Below are positions 2,047 through 10,504 of a stretch of 64,000 nucleotides of DNA, piece by piece. This DNA is from Setoptus koraiensis (lineage: Eukaryota; Animalia; Arthropoda). Where the stretch lies: contig CM106586.1 in the NCBI GenBank assembly GCA_048013815.1, forward strand, positions 5,146,001 through 5,210,000, in the 5' to 3' direction. A model generated the notes under the pieces. It saw only the letters and a program-made list of their open reading frames with translations, had not been told where the DNA came from and searched no databases. Numbering within the stretch: the stretch's first letter is position 1; the number at the start of each line of letters is the position of its first letter. Both the position numbers and the translations under genes were made by a program.

Positions 2047-4479
2047 CTACCTAACTCGAACCTTCGGCTGCCTCACTGCTTTTACATTCCTGCTTGGACT
2101 TCTATTTTGCTGTCCTGTAATGGGCGCTATAAGCGCGCCCAATATTGCGAAAACAAATATAAAAAACCATTTGTCAGGACTCAGATTCTCCAATCCAAAG
2201 GCATTAGTTTCTGTAAGAGTTATCTAATTACAGTAGTATATTTGGGAAGATTGTACAAAAGAATTATTATAATATATAGTAATAAACGATTTTCATGAAG
2301 GAATTCGTACATTTTGCTGAAACTGTTCAGGTGATAAAACTTACTTGTAGGAATATAGAGAAAATCAGTATGCATACAAAAAACGGGTGACTAGAGGAGC
2401 CCGCCAGTATGTTGAAACTGCCAGACTGGTTGAAACAATTTATCAGATTGAAGATATTATTGAGCACTAGCGAGTTAAATGCCATAGTTTGATGCTGTCT
2501 TTTACTCTCCACATTAATTTGGAACATTACTTTTCCTGTAGATCATATCGAGATGGAGAGAGTTACCAGGAGGTTTAGTTATTTTAGTATTTACTTTGCG
2601 AGTCTCTGTGTCAGAAGATCAAAGAAACTTACCAAAAACCATCACTATTAACATGACAATAATCTGGTAAGCAACGTGTAGTTTTATCAATTTGAATGTC
2701 ACATCATCGATTAGTTTGCTGTGATGGAATGTCTGGCGAAAATCAGAAATGATTTCTTTGTTTATGACTGTCTCATCTAGATTGACATAGGATGCCTCTG
2801 GAGTTACGGTTATAGCTGGCATAGATCCATCCAACTGAATCATTGAATGTCTGTATTCTTTCGGCCCTCCGTGTAAATAAGACTGATCTGATGATTGATT
2901 CTGGTCATTAGACATATGTAATTGGAAGGACGAGGCCCTTCTATGACTGTTTGGCTTCTGAGGGCTGACACTGGCTCTATGATGGCTATTTAGATTCCCC
3001 TGGGAAGCTCTCATCTGTTTACTTGATACGCTGCTAGAAAGGTTTGTATTTGATCTGATCGGGGTGGTGCCCGTGGAAAAGCTACTCTGTTGCGAAATAT
3101 TCGGCAGTTTCAGTGGAGCTCTGGGCAATGAAGAGAGCCATTTGGTCATCAAAGAGGCCACTCCCAAAAGCACATATATGATGGTCAGTAGAACAAACTG
3201 GCTATTGGATAATATGTAATCTTGAAATACCATAATGGTTAAAAATCTATAAAGACAACATGATACGGACATGCTTACTTGAAACAATGCGAATGATTGT
3301 GTTATATTTGATGCAAGCAAACAAGTGATCAAAAATAGGTAAACATCGGAGAAGTTCAAGTCCGGTGACTTTAGCATAACTTGTGATTCGCGTTTCACAT
3401 CATCATCATCACAATCTTGAAATGTGACACCACAATCAGCTAATTTCATTGCCTCAGGATCGGTGAAAGTATATCCAAAATATACTAGGTTCTCATTGGG
3501 GAGTGGATGACATTTTTTGATTAAATATATTAAAAAAGACTTATCTGCTGGTGTTGCTTGTGACATGATTTTCATACGAGATAATAGATAACAAACTTTG
3601 CTTTGCTTGATGTCGCCCCTTGAGTCGGTGATGATTTTGAGAAGATCAACAGATCTAATAACAGCTAATCTATGATGTTCCTTTCTGATGAGACCAATGC
3701 TGATACCCAATTTGCGAGCATCTTCAAATGAATCTTCGACGACCAATTTGGGCTTGATATAAGATTTAGATAACTGATGGATAACGTCCCGAACCTGAAA
3801 ATAGACATCAAAAATAGTCGTAAGTCAACAAATCAGAAAAGAGCAGCGGTGGTGCTTTGATGACACGAATGATGATACTCACTAAAGGCCTCAGTCTGGT
3901 TGTAGAGGGCTGATTGAAAGCTTGACCATCGCCAAACATGATGTATTTCGGTATGACATTCAGAATCTGATCATCTTTAATTCTGATTCTAGATTCACCA
4001 GCTCGCCATTTAGCGCATTTCTTGTTGAATAATGTACATATAGGTAAACCTAATGGTATGATTACAGACACAATCGCTATGGATTGTTCAATAAATTCCA
4101 ATATTCTTTCTAAAAAGTATTTTGATACAGTTACAGATGCTAGATCTTTATTTCCTGATGTCGACGAAGATACAACAATTGGCGAAGACGTATCCAACTC
4201 CTTGACAGCATAACGTACTATCAAACCAATGAAAGTTATTACTCCCAATGTTATACCTATAACAATATAATAGTAATGTTTTTTTCTTGCTGATGTCAGT
4301 CGCTGAGTGAACAAGATGATTTTTTTTTTATGAAAACAGTCATACAACTCACCTAATTGCAGTAATTTCCTGCAAACATTGTCATATATATGGGCAGGTT
4401 TGCTTCTTATTGTGGCAATCTCATCTTGAACGCCTTCTTTGGTGGCCGTAGAATCATATGAGGTCATTCGGCGATTCAT
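2047..4479 (-). CDS. Degenerate PMCA-like (P2B) P-type ATPase homolog, predicted catalytically dead; exons 3883-4479, 2633-3794, 2345-2535, 2047-2223 (708 aa)
   Basis: Three ORF-track fragments plus a short last exon join in frame through GT-AG introns 3795-3882, 2536-2632 and 2224-2344 (donors GTGAGT, GTAAGT, GTAAGT). The joined protein is collinear with PMCA: FTQRLT~LQGKLT; VSVIIPLGLP~VVAVPEGLP; RPLVRDVI~RPEVPDAI; ITDSRGDIKQ~IRNEKGEVEQ; SQATPADK~ARSSPTDK; AMKLADCG~ALKKADVG; HVAYQ~HAFYQ; QHQTMAFNSLVL~QHYTIVFNTFVL; LSPDKW~LSLSQW. Confidence 0.85.
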
Positions 4480-6435
4480 AATGTTTCGAATTGTGCAGAA
4501 TAGTAATCAAAGTTTGCAAAACATCACACATGACACTCATAATGCACATTTGTTGACAATGTTGTTGATCCGAACTGTTTTTTCAAATAGCTTGAAGTGG
4601 GTTTGTTGAACTAAAATACAAAAATGTAGAGCTCATATTGATCAAATGATGAGTGAAGATGAAGCCATTAAACTTTTTGTTGTTTCACTTGCGCAAATAT
4701 TAGGTATGCGTGACACAGATCCACGGCGCACTCTCAGAGCGAATATCAAATGGTGGCTAATGTGATTATAGTGTACTAGTAAGATTCTATATGTATGGCT
4801 TGCTGAAGATGAAGTGTTATTAATGGTGTCTATTGTGAGATATGAATAGTTTTATTTTTAGATGAAAGCATATAGACCCAATCATCCATCATAAAGATTA
4901 TAGAGTATCATGCTGGTTCAATAAGTCCATTATGTTAACAACAGAAACTATCTGATGTAATGTTGCTACAGCAAGCGGGCGAAATCTAGGCGGAGTCCTG
5001 TTATTATAAGCCTAGATGATGGTGATTAAGCTTTGTGATTCAGACTGCCAATAAATCACTAGTTTCAAGGCATCATTTAATTAGATCATGTTTCTATCCA
5101 ATATAGATGTCATCACGCACGCGTAAATACTTCATCGAAAACCTTCATTTAACTAGTTGGCACTTTTTTGACGTGGAATATAGTTTTATGAAAAGATTCA
5201 AGCAGGTCAGACATTGTTCGGCCAAACTAGCCTACTCTCTTTGCATACTCATTTGAAGGTTAATCTATTTTGAATTGATGATAGATTGTGATTGATGAGA
5301 TTTTCTGTATATGAGTACATCGGTATATTCAGTAAGTTGAGCGAGAAGCTCACCATTCAATGTGAATATATTTATGAACGGATTTTATGCGAGAGATTCG
5401 AAGACCGAATCATGACTGACAAGGTGCCCACAGTAGGACAGAAAACTTGTGAAAATCATGTTGCCCTGATATATTCTATGAACCGATTTTATATACCTAT
5501 TGTGCAAACCTCAAAGTTATTGGTGGATGTTGTTTCGACAAGTTACGAAACTAATGGTTACATGCAGTATTTCGCTTGCTAACATATATTTCGTGGAAAG
5601 AGGAATGAACAATGTGAAGTATTGGCACTGAAATTTGGGTTCATGAATTATTGATTCACAGCCAGATTGAGATCGTGCTGGTCGTTGCAATGATTAATTA
5701 ACAGCACACAACACGTGCAAATATAGCGTGTGGGCGGAATATCCATCGGAATAGCCTGAGCAGCCGATTGTTTTGACGGTAACATTAGTTATACGCTATG
5801 GTGGCGTTGTCAAATCTTCATAATTTTACATGCTAATGAGCCATTAGCAGTGACTATCACTAAATTTGATGGCGACTCATGTAGGCAAGCAAATGGCCTC
5901 AATGTTAGTATGTTCTCTTCTCTGTGTTTTCATGCTCGTATGTTGTTACTGTGCAAAAAATAATCATCAGGTTGGCATCATGCTAATGTCGAGTCATAAT
6001 TCAAATCACACAGCCATGATTATTAGTGACACGTCATGAAGTTATGTTAGCCTAACTTGCAAACTCACATAATGATAACTACCACACACTAATGTCTCGA
6101 TGAACTCTTTTGAGGCTACGCCCAATAGACCAAATGAACACTGCTGCTTTTTATTAGAACAGTGATGAGGCTGACTTTTGCTCCTCTTTTATGTGTAGTA
6201 TCTTGAATTCTGACGCAGATGATATTGCCTCAGTTGCTGGCGTCCATGGGGCCAAACATGGGAGCATAGTGTACGTGAATATAGCGAAGTTGTTGTAGTA
6301 TGGCTTTGGTTTTAGCCATCAATTTTGTTGTTCGATCTCAAATTGTGTCGTGATGATAAAAGTTAGCAAAAAGTTAGCAGCAACGTGGTACACTAACTAT
6401 CACTGATTTCAACTCTCGTACATGTAGTCTATTAT

Positions 6436-7455
6436 TTATTCCACGAGGACTCTAACGGCATCAGAATCTTTTATCGAGTAACGTACGCCGTTGTAGTTGT
6501 ACACAGGCGCTGGTTCTTTGCCGAACCCGGGCAAATTTGATGTACTAGATTGACCACTGAAACATCGATCAGAATCCTCATCAAGTAGTAAGGCAAGCCA
6601 GAATGCTGTTATAGAGTGCAATATTAAATCAATAGACTGTGATATAATATCCAAGTATTTCTCATACAGATGATTCTCGTAGGCCACCCAAGCCGGATTA
6701 ACTCTTCTATTATCGTCATCATCTGCATTATCTTCGTCATCAATATCCGACTCTTTAATTGGTACAATCGAGGTTACTTTTCTCAAAGTGTCAGTCTCCA
6801 CAGTAGTACTTGTCGTTATTATTGGTTCTGAAGATTTGTCCTTTAAATGAGGATCATTTTTTAGATCGTCTGGATGAATGTATTCGTAATCACTGCTGAG
6901 GTCGAGATTGTTTCTTGAGTTGTTCTTTTTTGTTCCTCCGACATCCAACGAGGCATCATACTCATAGTCTTTGTCGCTCGATCTAGTTTTGCTTGTTACC
7001 TTTCGCTTAACAATACCTTCGCTGTTGTTCTTATTAGTATTATTATTAACATTATCAAGGCCGATCTTCGTTCGATTGTTGTTGGAACTGTTCCAGCTGA
7101 AATTCCTGACAGATTTTACTGAGCGAAGCGACGATAATGAATTATCTGTTGGTTGAACTTGCTTCGATGGTGTTATCTTTTCATAATAGGGCATTCTGGG
7201 CTGCTGGCCGCTCTGATTTGTTGTTCCAACGGCGTAAATAATGATCGAGGCCAACATTATAAGACACATACTGATGGCATACACAACTAGTATACATCTA
7301 TTTTCGATTGTTATACCAATCAGGCCTATTAGACAGAATGCTATCAATATAATCACTATCATGAGATTGTCGTCACGATGAAAGCATTTTCTCAATGATG
7401 ATGCTGTCAATAATAACAAATTGATAAACAGCGACGTTTTAATAGTGAACTTCAT
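6436..7455 (-). CDS. Tetraspanin-like four-TM membrane protein with a long low-complexity loop
   Basis: Intronless ORF, ATG at 7455. It has three N-terminal hydrophobic segments; LIGLIGITIENRCILVVY resembles the tetraspanin TM2-TM3 signature (GxxGAxxENRCLL). A fourth hydrophobic segment (IISQSIDLILHSITAFWLALLL) follows a ~195-aa polar loop. Confidence 0.6.
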   Translation of the reverse strand: MKFTIKTSLFINLLLLTASSLRKCFHRDDNLMIVIILIAFCLIGLIGITIENRCILVVYAISMCLIMLASIIIYAVGTTNQSGQQPRMPYYEKITPSKQVQPTDNSLSSLRSVKSVRNFSWNSSNNNRTKIGLDNVNNNTNKNNSEGIVKRKVTSKTRSSDKDYEYDASLDVGGTKKNNSRNNLDLSSDYEYIHPDDLKNDPHLKDKSSEPIITTSTTVETDTLRKVTSIVPIKESDIDDEDNADDDDNRRVNPAWVAYENHLYEKYLDIISQSIDLILHSITAFWLALLLDEDSDRCFSGQSSTSNLPGFGKEPAPVYNYNGVRYSIKDSDAVRVLVE

Positions 7456-7816
7456 AGTGCGCAAGCTATTCCAATTAAAAATTGAAACCGACGAGCTAGA
7501 GGAATGTTTACGTTATTGGGAGCTGGTTGGTAGTATTTTTGCTTATCACGTTGATTGTGATTTTCCTAGACAATTGGTCCGTTGTTGATTAATAATAACT
7601 GTTCCTTCCTTCAGTTATTTTCGTTCAGATTTTGTTTTCGGATGATGACTAATTCAAATCGTCATTCTTGATTCTATCCCATGCTCATCCACAGTGTGAC
7701 AATAATACGAATTGATTTATATAGGTTGTGTCCAGGACACTCCAGAATGATATAATAACCACACAGATCGAACTTTTTTGAGCGCTCTAGTTTGTCGATG
7801 TTTTGCCAAGTTCGTT

Positions 7817-7852
7817 TGCGCCTGCGCAGTGAGCGTGTGCTCCAAAATGGCG
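7817..7852. promoter_or_regulatory. NRF1/EWG-type site (TGCGCCTGCGCA, 7817-7828) plus YY1/Pho-type motif (AAAATGGCG, 7844-7852)
   Basis: Consensus matches in the intergenic region between the divergent tetraspanin-like and ZMYND19 genes. A second YY1-type motif (AAGATGGCG) lies on the minus strand at 8776-8784. Confidence 0.4.
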
Positions 7853-9586
7853 CCAATTCAGTCAAGATTCGGCTGGCAGTGTTTCGGACTAAGGGAACAA
7901 GTGTTCATCGCTGCAAGATCTCCACCCTGGGCGTGATCCCGAATGTCCGCCAGTGAAAATGACAGGCGGGGTCACTAGAGAATGACTGAGTGAGAATGAC
8001 TTTAAAAATTTTGTGAGGAGACAGAACCAGGAGTAGAGGACGATCGAATTGGAAGAGATACAATGATCATGACAGTCATCACAGTCATCCCAGATATCTC
8101 AATCAATGCGCTCACACAACAGGATTTTCTATCTGATTTTCACTCCGTCACCAATCACTACGTCCTCCCTGTTTCACTCCGTCTCCCAAATTTGCCAGAG
8201 TTAAAGAATTGGAGTGATCCATCACCTCGAAACACTATCCGCTGCCAAGCTACTCTTTGTGCGAGGTAGTGTCTACTTCTTCTATCAAACTCTGTTTTCA
8301 CCAGAAAATCATTGTTGACCTCAGTCCGAGACGCCCCATCATATCTGTATGATCGCCATTCTTAATAATAGTGTTTTAACCGTGCTCTGGGCTGTCCCGA
8401 TCGGCTCAGCTCAGCTCACTTTTTGACTCAAAGAGTAAACTTGACTAATGGCGTTATATGATATAGATGTTAGTTCCGGTCTAAATTGCAAACTTTGAGC
8501 TCATGTAGAGCCTTGCATAATCAACACAAGTCAGAGTCCGAGGTCTGGATGTTGATTGAGCCGTTCGACAGATAGCTAAATAGTTTAGCTGTCAATGATC
8601 ATGACAACTGACAGAGTAGACCAAACTGAATCCATTCTAAGTTGAAACTTGTTTGCTATTGAGACTTATTCAACGAAGAATATTCTTTACACTGCTGTGT
8701 AAATGAGTTAGATGAAAAATACATTACAAACAAAAATTCATGTCCATAACATCATTTGATTGTATGAATAGGGGGCGCCATCTTTTGAGTGTGTTTCGGC
8801 ATTGGTGAACGAGCAACAAAACAGTGGCACAAGTGGTGAATGGCTCGCCTTACGACAACAACACAGATAGCACTGCTACAACAGCACACAGACACACACA
8901 CACACATACTTTATTTTAACCGATATCATGCGCAGTTGAACGCTTTGTTCGGATGAATTCCTCTTTCTCTCTGTCTCTCTCCCTTTCTCTTTATCTATTT
9001 CTCTTTATCAATTCAACAAACGTTTGCCTCATTTCTTCCATGACTACCTTGTTGAGAATCTTGATATCAATGTATGCCAAGAAATGCCATCAGCTATCAC
9101 CTTTGCCCACACCTATCTAATCCATATCACACTGAATACACTGTAGATAGCAATAGCCGGAATTTCAGAGTACAACAATCTTGGCTCACACTCAAATACA
9201 CACCAGAGCTACATCACCTACATAAAACTCTATCTCGTGACCAAAGGATGACCCTCAATATATTTCACCATTGGAATTCTAAAACGCAGATATAACCAGC
9301 TTGCTTGATTAAAAGAAGCACCTTAGACACGACGAAATCGCTGATGATACACACATTTTCACTCTAGCACGCACGAATACAATATTTTCCATGCTCATAC
9401 ACATTGAACAGCCTGCAATCTGTGCATCATCACATTTATAATATCGGCACCGTTACACGCTAATTTGGCCCAAGTGACCTATCCCGCTTCATCATCTGTG
9501 GATATCATTTGTTATTATTATCTACTTTATAAATAAACTAACATCTTATTACACAAGAGATACCAATTGATTAAACATTGATCAAA

Positions 9587-10504
9587 ATGAAAGACGATGA
9601 TACCATACCGTGCGGATTGAAGCTCAGTCTCATCAAGTTGGGCCGGGTAGCCGGCAAAATAAAATACACTCTTGTCGACGATAGAGACTTGGACTTAACT
9701 AATCTCTTCTATCTAGACGCTAGACTTGACATAGATAGAAATGGCAATGGAGCCTCGATTCATGCCTTTGCTTATAAACGAGGCTCAGAACGTGACACTG
9801 CTATACATTTGCATAAATTAATATGGCTCAAACATCATGAATATATACCTCAAGGTTACTTTGTGACCCATCACAATGATATTACTATGGATAATAGATT
9901 GGACAATCTTTACCTTTTAACTGCTGAAGATTATATCAAGAAGATCATCAATCGATACAATGAATCACTCTCTATTAAACGTTCATCTAGCTCAAACAAC
10001 AACGCAACATCGGAAACATCGACCTCCTCACATAGTAACAGAATTGATAATCAACTGGCCACAACCAGCAATATAACGACACCAAATGTTTGTAACGCTG
10101 CCAGAAATACAAATGCCACTATTAGTAACACCACAACAAACCAACACGATAATCTCTATTATGAAGCCCTTAAGAAATTAGACCTCAGACGTATAATAGA
10201 GGAAGATTCTAATTGTGTCAGTAGGGCTAATCGAAGCTACGACGCGAATGGCGACTTTGTTTTATCCACAAGCGCAACGTCTATTTTTGAGTGTCGTCAT
10301 CTGTTGTGTAACCGAGTTGAGGCGGAACCGGGACAATTCTCAATTTGTGGAAGGTGCCAGGAGGCGCGCTACTGTGGTAAACCTTGTCAACTGTCGGATT
10401 GGCCGGTTCATTTGAAACTCTGTCGAGAAAAAGAGCAGCCTAGGTCTCAACCATCATCATCACATGATGACGACGATGCTGATTTCTCTAGTGATAATAA
10501 GTAG
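9587..10504 (+). CDS. ZMYND19: Zinc finger MYND domain-containing protein 19
   Basis: LKLSLIKLGRVAGKIKYTLVD, DRNGNGASIHAFAY, HKLIW...VTHHNDITMDNRLDNL (HNH-like), YDANGD and the MYND finger FSICGRCQEARYCGKPCQLSDWPVHLKLC. First ATG at 9587; intronless. Confidence 0.93.
   Translation: MKDDDTIPCGLKLSLIKLGRVAGKIKYTLVDDRDLDLTNLFYLDARLDIDRNGNGASIHAFAYKRGSERDTAIHLHKLIWLKHHEYIPQGYFVTHHNDITMDNRLDNLYLLTAEDYIKKIINRYNESLSIKRSSSSNNNATSETSTSSHSNRIDNQLATTSNITTPNVCNAARNTNATISNTTTNQHDNLYYEALKKLDLRRIIEEDSNCVSRANRSYDANGDFVLSTSATSIFECRHLLCNRVEAEPGQFSICGRCQEARYCGKPCQLSDWPVHLKLCREKEQPRSQPSSSHDDDDADFSSDNK

Follow-up and report, generated by a model that had tools for sequence, protein, structure and literature searches.

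The window analysed here, a 64,000-nucleotide (nt) stretch of the Setoptus koraiensis genome (GenBank assembly GCA_048013815.1, contig CM106586.1, positions 5,146,001 to 5,210,000), carries a spliced gene on its minus strand at 4479..2047. As far as its identity is concerned, this gene is very probably a descendant of a plasma-membrane Ca2+-ATPase (PMCA), a P-type ATPase of the P2B class. Its product has kept the stalk helix before membrane helix M3, the eight membrane helices M3-M10 and the Rossmann-like core of the P domain, and it lacks the parts that would be required for pumping. The reading favoured here, with somewhat better than even confidence, is that of a functional, lineage-restricted gene of eriophyoid mites, derived from PMCA and most likely encoding a non-catalytic membrane scaffold or regulator.

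Descent from PMCA had been proposed in a first-pass annotation made from the sequence alone, and it has been borne out by profile, pairwise and structural comparisons. Exon 2 alone aligns with residues 670-875 of PMCA2 (9gsd) in a phmmer search (expectation value, E, 1.6e-9) and also matches PMCA1 (6a69), while exon 3 alone scores 30.2 bits against the Pfam domain Cation_ATPase_C (PF00689; cut-off 27.3 bits, E 4.6e-7), a domain for which the intronless, full-length ortholog P0020 reaches 47.3 bits. When a profile of the family was compared with all PDB chain sequences, PMCA-type pumps only were retrieved, namely PMCA2 (1.9e-26), PMCA1 (1.6e-22) and the plant PMCA-type ACA8 (1e-8), with no match to SERCA at E <= 0.01. 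The profile matches in two blocks, one comprising the P domain with M5-M6 and the other M7-M10, with profile domain 521-641 aligning to PMCA2 901-1030. A comparison with a sand-fly PMCA by hhalign gave a probability of 98.4% over residues 687-1051. In a library of 1.84 billion representative proteins, the seven sequences found at E <= 1e-10 were family members and fragments, and the next matches were ordinary PMCA-type pumps, mostly from animals, at E 1e-6 to 5e-4. The PMCA-specific segment IRNEKGEIEQ reads ITDSRGDIKQ in the alignments, as had been noticed at first reading.

The same relationship has been recovered from structure. An AlphaFold model of P0020 shows a predicted local distance difference test score (pLDDT) above 90 in the P domain and of 60-75 in the membrane part, with disordered loops, and its best Foldseek matches are complexes of PMCA with neuroplastin (NPTN; E 8.8e-13). 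With VIA-align, 421 residues of the model could be superposed on PMCA2 (Z 26.2; model 35-692 on PMCA2 338-1007), and on SERCA the match begins at about residue 243, which is the start of M3. Because of these structural alignments, the protein is interpreted as M3-M10 with a P domain that lacks the N domain. The earlier claim that helices 3 to 10 are retained holds at the level of sequence for M5-M10, while M3 and M4 are assigned from the structure model. Exon 1 alone matches nothing in Pfam or the PDB, and an N-terminal profile built from four sequences gave no significant hhalign match to PMCA; the corresponding profile of 38 sequences gave a marginal one (E 0.028) that is colinear with M3 and M4. 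MAFFT also pairs the family motif IIPLGFP with VAVPEGLP of PMCA.

The extent of what has been lost is considerable. The protein starts 43 residues before M3, its start Met is conserved in five species and an in-frame stop lies upstream in the ortholog L002, so that M1-M2 and the A domain are taken to be truly absent rather than overlooked. The structural match starting at M3 agrees with the first-pass observation that no A domain or TGES motif is visible. A Pfam search of the window exons and of P0020, which had been suggested as a check, returned Cation_ATPase_C and no match to E1-E2_ATPase, Cation_ATPase or Hydrolase, the last being missing in P0020 even at E <= 1. The N domain, of about 215 residues in PMCA, has been replaced by a linker of about 10 residues between the first P-domain strand and the RLRPLVRD segment. 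A variable, Ser-rich disordered loop of 130-300 residues has been inserted between M6 and M7. PMCA alignments end at M10, after which the window protein has 19 basic residues and its relatives carry variable Gln/His-rich tails, with no recognisable calmodulin-binding tail.

The motifs on which P-type pumps depend have been remodelled in a consistent manner throughout the family, as seen in HMMER alignments to 9gsd and 6a69 and in a 48-row alignment. TGDN has become V-E-(D/E)-S family-wide (VEDS in the window), with Thr replaced by Val and the Glu present in 39/39 members. GDGTND has become G-Y-S-F-T-D (GYTFTD in the window), in which the first Asp is replaced by Tyr and the final T-D pair is kept in 39/39. 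SSPTDK reads (S/A)TPADK (ATPADK in the window), with TPADK in 39/39 and an invariant Lys. In M4, PEGLP has become P(L/I)GFP (PLGLP in the window), the Glu having been exchanged for Leu or Ile while the PxGxP helix break is invariant across the family. In M6, the Asn is replaced by Ile, Val or Thr and the Asp by Gln (Val in the window), so that the pump motif WVNLIMD reads LLTIIYV in the window. The first-pass readings VEDS, GYTFTD, LLTIIYV, ATPADK and ITDSRGDIKQ are thus all found in the alignments. The accompanying statement that every catalytic and Ca2+-binding residue has been replaced is true in part: the Ca2+ ligands have gone, and so have the TGDN Thr, the leading Asp of GDGxND and the KTGT residues, but among about 39 members there is little or no variation at the TPADK Lys, at the VEDS Asp, at the final Asp of GYTFTD or at a Gly-Asp pair that ends the first P-domain strand.

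The phosphorylation site requires separate consideration. Where pumps have DKTGT, the family reads (I/F)GD(A/S/T/G)(Q/L)A, with K, T, G and T all replaced and only an Asp that possibly corresponds. This Asp belongs to the first P-domain strand, (Y)(I/V/L)(V/I)(I/F)-G-D, whose Gly-Asp is found in 39/39 members. The earlier equation of DKTGT with GDGQA is not significant by sequence and relies on the structure model. MAFFT pairs the Gly-Asp with the GN of ETMGNAT and hhalign places it after DKTGT. Counted on the sequences, it lies 42-43 residues past the Pro of PxGxP, as compared to 43 in PMCA, and in the P0020 model the strand at 157-160 comes after another strand and a short helix, an order also seen in pumps. 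Because of this spacing and of the strand-helix-strand pattern of the model, the Asp probably occupies the position of the old phospho-Asp, one residue off the register first proposed. In terms of the four motifs of the HAD fold, motif I may thus have kept one Asp, the Thr of motif II has become Val, the Lys of motif III is kept, and in motif IV the first acid has become Tyr and the second Asp is kept. Set against the features of active P2B pumps, the protein lacks DKTGT, the N domain, the A domain/TGES with M1-M2, TGDN/GDGxND and the Ca2+ site-II ligands, and it possesses the M7-M10 region recognised as Cation_ATPase_C and the P-domain fold.

The structure of the gene differs from the one initially described, which comprised four exons and an open reading frame of 708 amino acids. 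Joining those four exons does give a frame of 708 amino acids, but this frame includes a 96-nt intron (4352..4257), and the true product has 676 amino acids encoded by five exons (Table 1). The 676-codon frame is uninterrupted in the window and equally so in L001, a genomic contig of 22 kb that comes from a different run and shows 85.6% identity over the gene. The additional intron was missed because it is only 96 nt long and open in the window genome. In L001 the corresponding stretch contains an in-frame TAA and indels of 2 nt and 9 nt and its identity collapses, in L002, L005 and L006 the frame breaks or meets stops immediately after …LLQLG, and the intronless orthologs P0020 and P0005 do not have the stretch at all, with …QLG or …KFG joined directly to (I/V)T(L/V). 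Its openness in the window is fortuitous. The Met of exon 1a and the motif IRxKPxxIYDNxxRRLLQLG have been kept in L002, L005, L006 and P0020. An alternative 50-nt intron, 4352..4303, has good splice signals but was rejected in favour of the 96-nt one that ends at 4257, since the shorter one would put both the window and L001 out of frame. A comparable trap has been observed in a relative, P0019, in which the M7-M8 intron (residues ~560-600) is open in frame and has been called as coding (…IFGKWNTFVSVPV…GNAMFQLN).

The gene is transcribed and spliced. RNA contigs from two runs of one study match portions of exons 2, 3 and 4 of the window at 100% identity, those on exon 2 covering 3163-3608 and 2664-2892. 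In a contig of run X4, exactly 2224-2344 is skipped, a segment bounded by CT..AC on the plus strand and hence by GT..AG on the gene strand, and a contig of run X5 shows the same 2345|2223 join, seen as a 13-nt loose end with one mismatch. The third junction of the first-pass annotation has therefore been found in spliced contigs of two runs, while the unspliced locus is present in two DNA runs. A competing model of 705 amino acids (model A; donor 2341, acceptor 2210) also keeps the frame and is ruled out by this RNA join. The three other joins are supported by exact colinearity with intronless or intron-poor orthologs and not by RNA; the join across intron 2, for example, is colinear with intronless P0020. 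Relative to L001, exons 2, 3 and 4 are gap-free with 86-92% identity, whereas the introns show 57-82% identity with indels, and splice sites are conserved. For intron 1 the identity is 70%, against 86-88% in the adjoining exons, and L004, L005 and L007 lack this intron and encode RLRPLVRD without interruption. Intron 2 is 57% identical and gapped, and an intron occupies the same position in L004 and L005. The number of introns differs among related mites, with none in L007, one in L004 (intron 2), one in L002 (intron 1a), two in L005 and four in the window and L001. The differences document introns being lost or gained step by step, in a lineage for which intron loss is well known.

Table 1. 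Features of the PMCA-derived gene in the window.
Feature	Coordinates	Strand	Description
Exon 1a	4353..4479	-	Start codon 4479-4477; 42 codons + 1 nt; N-terminal tail and stalk helix before M3 (…IYDNVCRKLLQLG)
Intron 1a	4257..4352	-	96 nt, GT..AG (GTGAGT start, TATAG end), phase 1; open in frame in the window
Exon 1b	3883..4256	-	M3, outer loop, M4, first P-domain strand YIMFGD, short linker replacing the N domain
M4 motif IIPLGLP	4045-4056	-	Corresponds to PEGLP, Glu -> Leu
Gly-Asp of first P-domain strand	3928-3933	-	Within exon 1b
Intron 1	3795..3882	-	88 nt, GT..AG; 5 codons downstream of the N-domain deletion point
Exon 2	2633..3794	-	C-terminal half of P domain, M5, M6, Ser-rich disordered loop, M7
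VEDS	3729-3740	-	P domain, exon 2
TPADK	3540-3554	-	P domain, exon 2
GYTFTD	3459-3476	-	P domain, exon 2
M6	3123-3203	-	Exon 2
Ser-rich loop	~3122-2745	-	Exon 2; followed by M7
Intron 2	2536..2632	-	97 nt, GT..AG
Exon 3	2345..2535	-	M8 and M9; 91% identity to L001, gap-free
Intron 3	2224..2344	-	121 nt, GTAAGT..TTAG; RNA-supported
Exon 4	2047..2223	-	M9-M10 loop (NAFGLENLSPDKW), M10, short basic tail, stop 2049-2047; 92% identity to L001, gap-free

Substitution patterns point to strong purifying selection on the gene. Between the window and L001, the rate of nonsynonymous change (dN) is 0.022 and that of synonymous change (dS) 0.46-0.59, giving a dN/dS ratio (omega) of ~0.04-0.05, and a second pair, L005 and L006, gives an omega of 0.04 at saturated dS. 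When the window and L001 are compared by region, all 13 differences in the N-terminal exon 1a are synonymous, exon 1b has a dN/dS of 0.027, M7-M10 an omega of 0.013 and the disordered loop one of 0.08, while the remnant of the P domain shows 43 nucleotide differences and 0 amino acid changes. Intact full-length models could be built for L002 (816 amino acids), L005 (840) and L004 (883), L007 presents an intronless open reading frame of 807 amino acids (2.4 kb) on a 10.9-kb genomic contig, and a protein search yielded about 40 clusters (90% identity) whose open frames span 480-807 residues. The earlier view that this is not a simple pseudogene is upheld by a dN/dS near 0.04, by intact orthologs in many species and by transcription and splicing; the dN/dS in relatives, which had been proposed as a check, lies far from 1, and the sole disrupted copy is the metagenomic L006. 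This syntenic copy (Joint Genome Institute (JGI) metagenome 3300061473, 7415-10281) contains two stops that arose by substitution, one frameshift together with a gap of 7 codons and another frameshift elsewhere, as well as a change from Asp to Val in the otherwise invariant Gly-Asp. As its omega is low, the damage points to a loss that is very recent, or else to errors of assembly.

The family has been seen only in data from eriophyoid-type (gall and rust) mites, whose genomes, of about 32 Mb, are heavily streamlined (PMC7738191). The only named protein that contains part of it is a chimeric GenBank model from Fragariocoptes setiger (P0053, 1223 amino acids), which fuses a tetraspanin, part of the pump-relic gene and a GABA-receptor beta subunit, and thereby hides the family.

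Taking into account the parts kept and lost, pumping is not expected of this protein, since it has no N domain, A domain/TGES, KTGT, motif II Thr, first motif IV Asp or ion ligands; lacking an ATP-binding domain, a dephosphorylation domain and an ion site, it would find a pump cycle impossible. A role as scaffold or regulator is preferred because constraint is highest on the cytosolic P-domain remnant, with its new invariant residues near the old active site, and on M7-M10, and the old ion-ligand positions vary between species. In pumps, M7-M10 form a static support bundle, and in PMCA the helix of neuroplastin or basigin docks on it. The mite protein could thus offer two binding surfaces, the first being the remodelled pocket of the former active site, with its invariant Asp, Glu-Asp, Lys, Tyr and Asp, and the second the M7-M10 support bundle, while the variable Ser-rich loop between M6 and M7 may serve as a regulated tether. 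In window numbering, the residues of this putative pocket are Asp152, Glu187, Asp188, Lys252, Tyr275 and Asp279. The roles put forward in the first-pass annotation, namely scaffold, leak pathway, sensor or regulator of the active PMCA or of neuroplastin/basigin, are hypothetical, as is the status of the gene as a paralog.

Among the alternatives, a passive ion pathway is unlikely but deserves to be considered first. According to this explanation, M3-M10 without M1-M2 and without the A-domain gate would form an ungated or loop-regulated leak, channel or facilitative carrier for cations in the plasma membrane or an organelle membrane. The ion-path helices M4, M5, M6 and M8 are kept and constrained, the break in M4 is invariant, and M5 and M6 are rich in polar residues, with Gln-Gln at the old Met-Asp position in most members. 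Truncated SERCA1 splice variants have, moreover, been reported to raise Ca2+ leak from the endoplasmic reticulum. Against such a pathway, all three Ca2+ ligands have been replaced, two of them by hydrophobic residues, and the replacing residues vary between species (Tyr-Val in the window, Gln-Gln in most), which is unlike a selectivity site; the strongest constraint also falls on the cytosolic P-domain remnant and not on the former ion site.

A second, rather improbable explanation is residual chemistry or ligand sensing, under which the P-domain remnant would still use its retained Asp, Lys and Asp and the new invariant Glu to bind a phosphoryl donor or a divalent cation, and would act as a sensor of cytosolic Ca2+/Mg2+ or of a phospho-signal coupled to the membrane part. 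About 39 sequences show no variation in Gly-Asp, Glu-Asp-Ser, TPADK or the T-D pair of GYSFTD, though these are unlike the pump motifs; the P domain is modelled at high confidence (pLDDT >90), and its 43 nucleotide changes are all synonymous. On the other hand, the Val in HAD motif II and the Tyr in place of the first motif IV acid, a Mg2+ ligand, speak against it, as does the lack of both an N domain that would deliver ATP and a TGES loop that would carry out hydrolysis; moreover, MAFFT and hhalign disagree on how Gly-Asp lines up with DKTGT, a register that sequence leaves ambiguous. A more elaborate version, which we regard as a long shot, is that the rebuilt acidic pocket senses cytosolic Ca2+/Mg2+ and gates the M3-M10 module through the loop, and that the gene could be the sole PMCA descendant left. 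If this were true, a pump would have been converted to a sensor or gated pathway, and if no other PMCA descendant remained, these animals would extrude Ca2+ without PMCA.

That the locus is a transcribed, decaying PMCA pseudogene without function is highly improbable, since the loss of catalytic motifs and whole domains, the two stops and two frameshifts of L006 and the low RNA depth with exon 1 uncovered are outweighed by a dN/dS of ~0.04 in two independent species pairs, by exons free of indels against L001 while the introns carry them, with splice sites conserved, by about 40 clusters with long open frames that include an intronless 2.4-kb one, and by retention of the gene in extremely streamlined genomes (PMC7738191).

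Several points weigh against a conserved gene for a non-catalytic scaffold or regulator. The scaffold or regulator role is proposed from the parts kept and lost. The homology of the stalk, M3, M4 and the first P-domain strand is not significant by sequence alone, and exons 1a and 1b have no transcript contig in the runs examined, in which RNA depth is low. Given the disruption of L006, one or more lineages may be able to do without the gene, unless the assembly is faulty. With Asp, Lys and Asp still present where the active site used to be, there is a slight possibility of residual chemistry or metal binding, and the retention of M4-M6 and M8, all ion-path helices in pumps, makes a passive conductance conceivable.

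The surroundings of the gene have also been compared among mites. In the window, a single-exon gene for a 660-residue E(z)/EZH2-like protein (CXC and SET domains) at 34-2016 on the plus strand converges on the pump relic. Their stop codons lie about 30 nt apart (2016 vs 2047), a spacing that requires their 3' untranslated regions to overlap, and an RNA contig of run X5 extends from the E(z)/EZH2-like gene through exon 4 of the relic and on into its intron 3. L001 shares the neighbours of the window: a tetraspanin gene lies upstream of the relic, and an E(z)/EZH2-like gene converges on it from the downstream side; the stretch of L001 that carries the tetraspanin gene aligns with ~4983-7868 (minus strand) upstream of the relic in the window. 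In L005 and L006 a tetraspanin gene likewise precedes the relic, and a gene with a TMIE domain is found farther upstream, so that the arrangement forms a conserved micro-synteny block.

The A, N and P domains and the ten helices of P-type ATPases act together, and we know of hardly any natural proteins that keep part of this machine under strong selection. The family constitutes a natural dissection, in which M3-M10 and the P-domain core have been kept and the rest removed by evolution. It persists in the smallest arthropod genomes, from which useless genes tend to vanish. The family therefore allows one to ask what the support bundle and the P-domain core do on their own, whether in partner binding, membrane organisation, leak or sensing. 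There is also a point for annotation, as the sole public named model, from Fragariocoptes setiger, is a chimera. The reach of these considerations is limited, since the family has been seen in only one mite lineage.

Comparison with known systems places the family apart from each of them. The first-pass annotation had stated that no animal family of such architecture has been described, and none turned up in a full-text literature search, in which no paper on a conserved P-type ATPase derivative without A and N domains and M1-M2 was found and only TMEM94/ERMA was loosely comparable. AlphaFold DB clusters and the ESM Atlas likewise returned generic P-type and HAD matches only, with no family of the same architecture. 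TMEM94/ERMA has the shape of a P-type ATPase, and its pump activity is disputed (PMC12134183 vs PMC13322241); according to one structural study, it has neither a TGES motif nor ATPase activity and does not go through a Post-Albers cycle (PMC12134183). The two resemble each other in combining P-type architecture with degenerate motifs, in a pump fold whose non-pumping use is in question. However, TMEM94 is widespread in animals and has ten helices and counterparts of the three cytoplasmic domains, whereas the mite protein has lost two domains and two helices, and in the search of all PDB chain sequences no TMEM94 chain matched the family profile at E <= 0.01.

With HAD phosphatases, the mite protein shares the Rossmann-like core, the motif III Lys, one motif IV Asp and an Asp that ends the first strand, but it has no Pfam Hydrolase match, carries Val for the motif II Thr and Tyr for the first motif IV Asp, and is devoid of a cap or N domain. 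Another parallel is offered by the truncated splice variants of SERCA1 (S1T), which are shortened P2 Ca2+ pumps that do not pump and nonetheless have an effect in the cell. These are splice products of an active pump gene and keep its N-terminal half, whereas the mite protein is the product of a separate, conserved gene that keeps M3-M10. The closest likeness is to PMCA/ATP2B itself (6a69, 9gsd), with which the protein has in common the P-domain core, the P2B segment, the Lys of (S/T)PxDK, M5-M10 and the Cation_ATPase_C signature. It differs from PMCA in having no M1-M2, A domain/TGES, N domain or recognisable calmodulin tail, in the insert between M6 and M7, and in its eight helices as compared to ten. 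The mite protein thus resembles a pseudoenzyme built from a pump and falls outside the active P-type ATPases.

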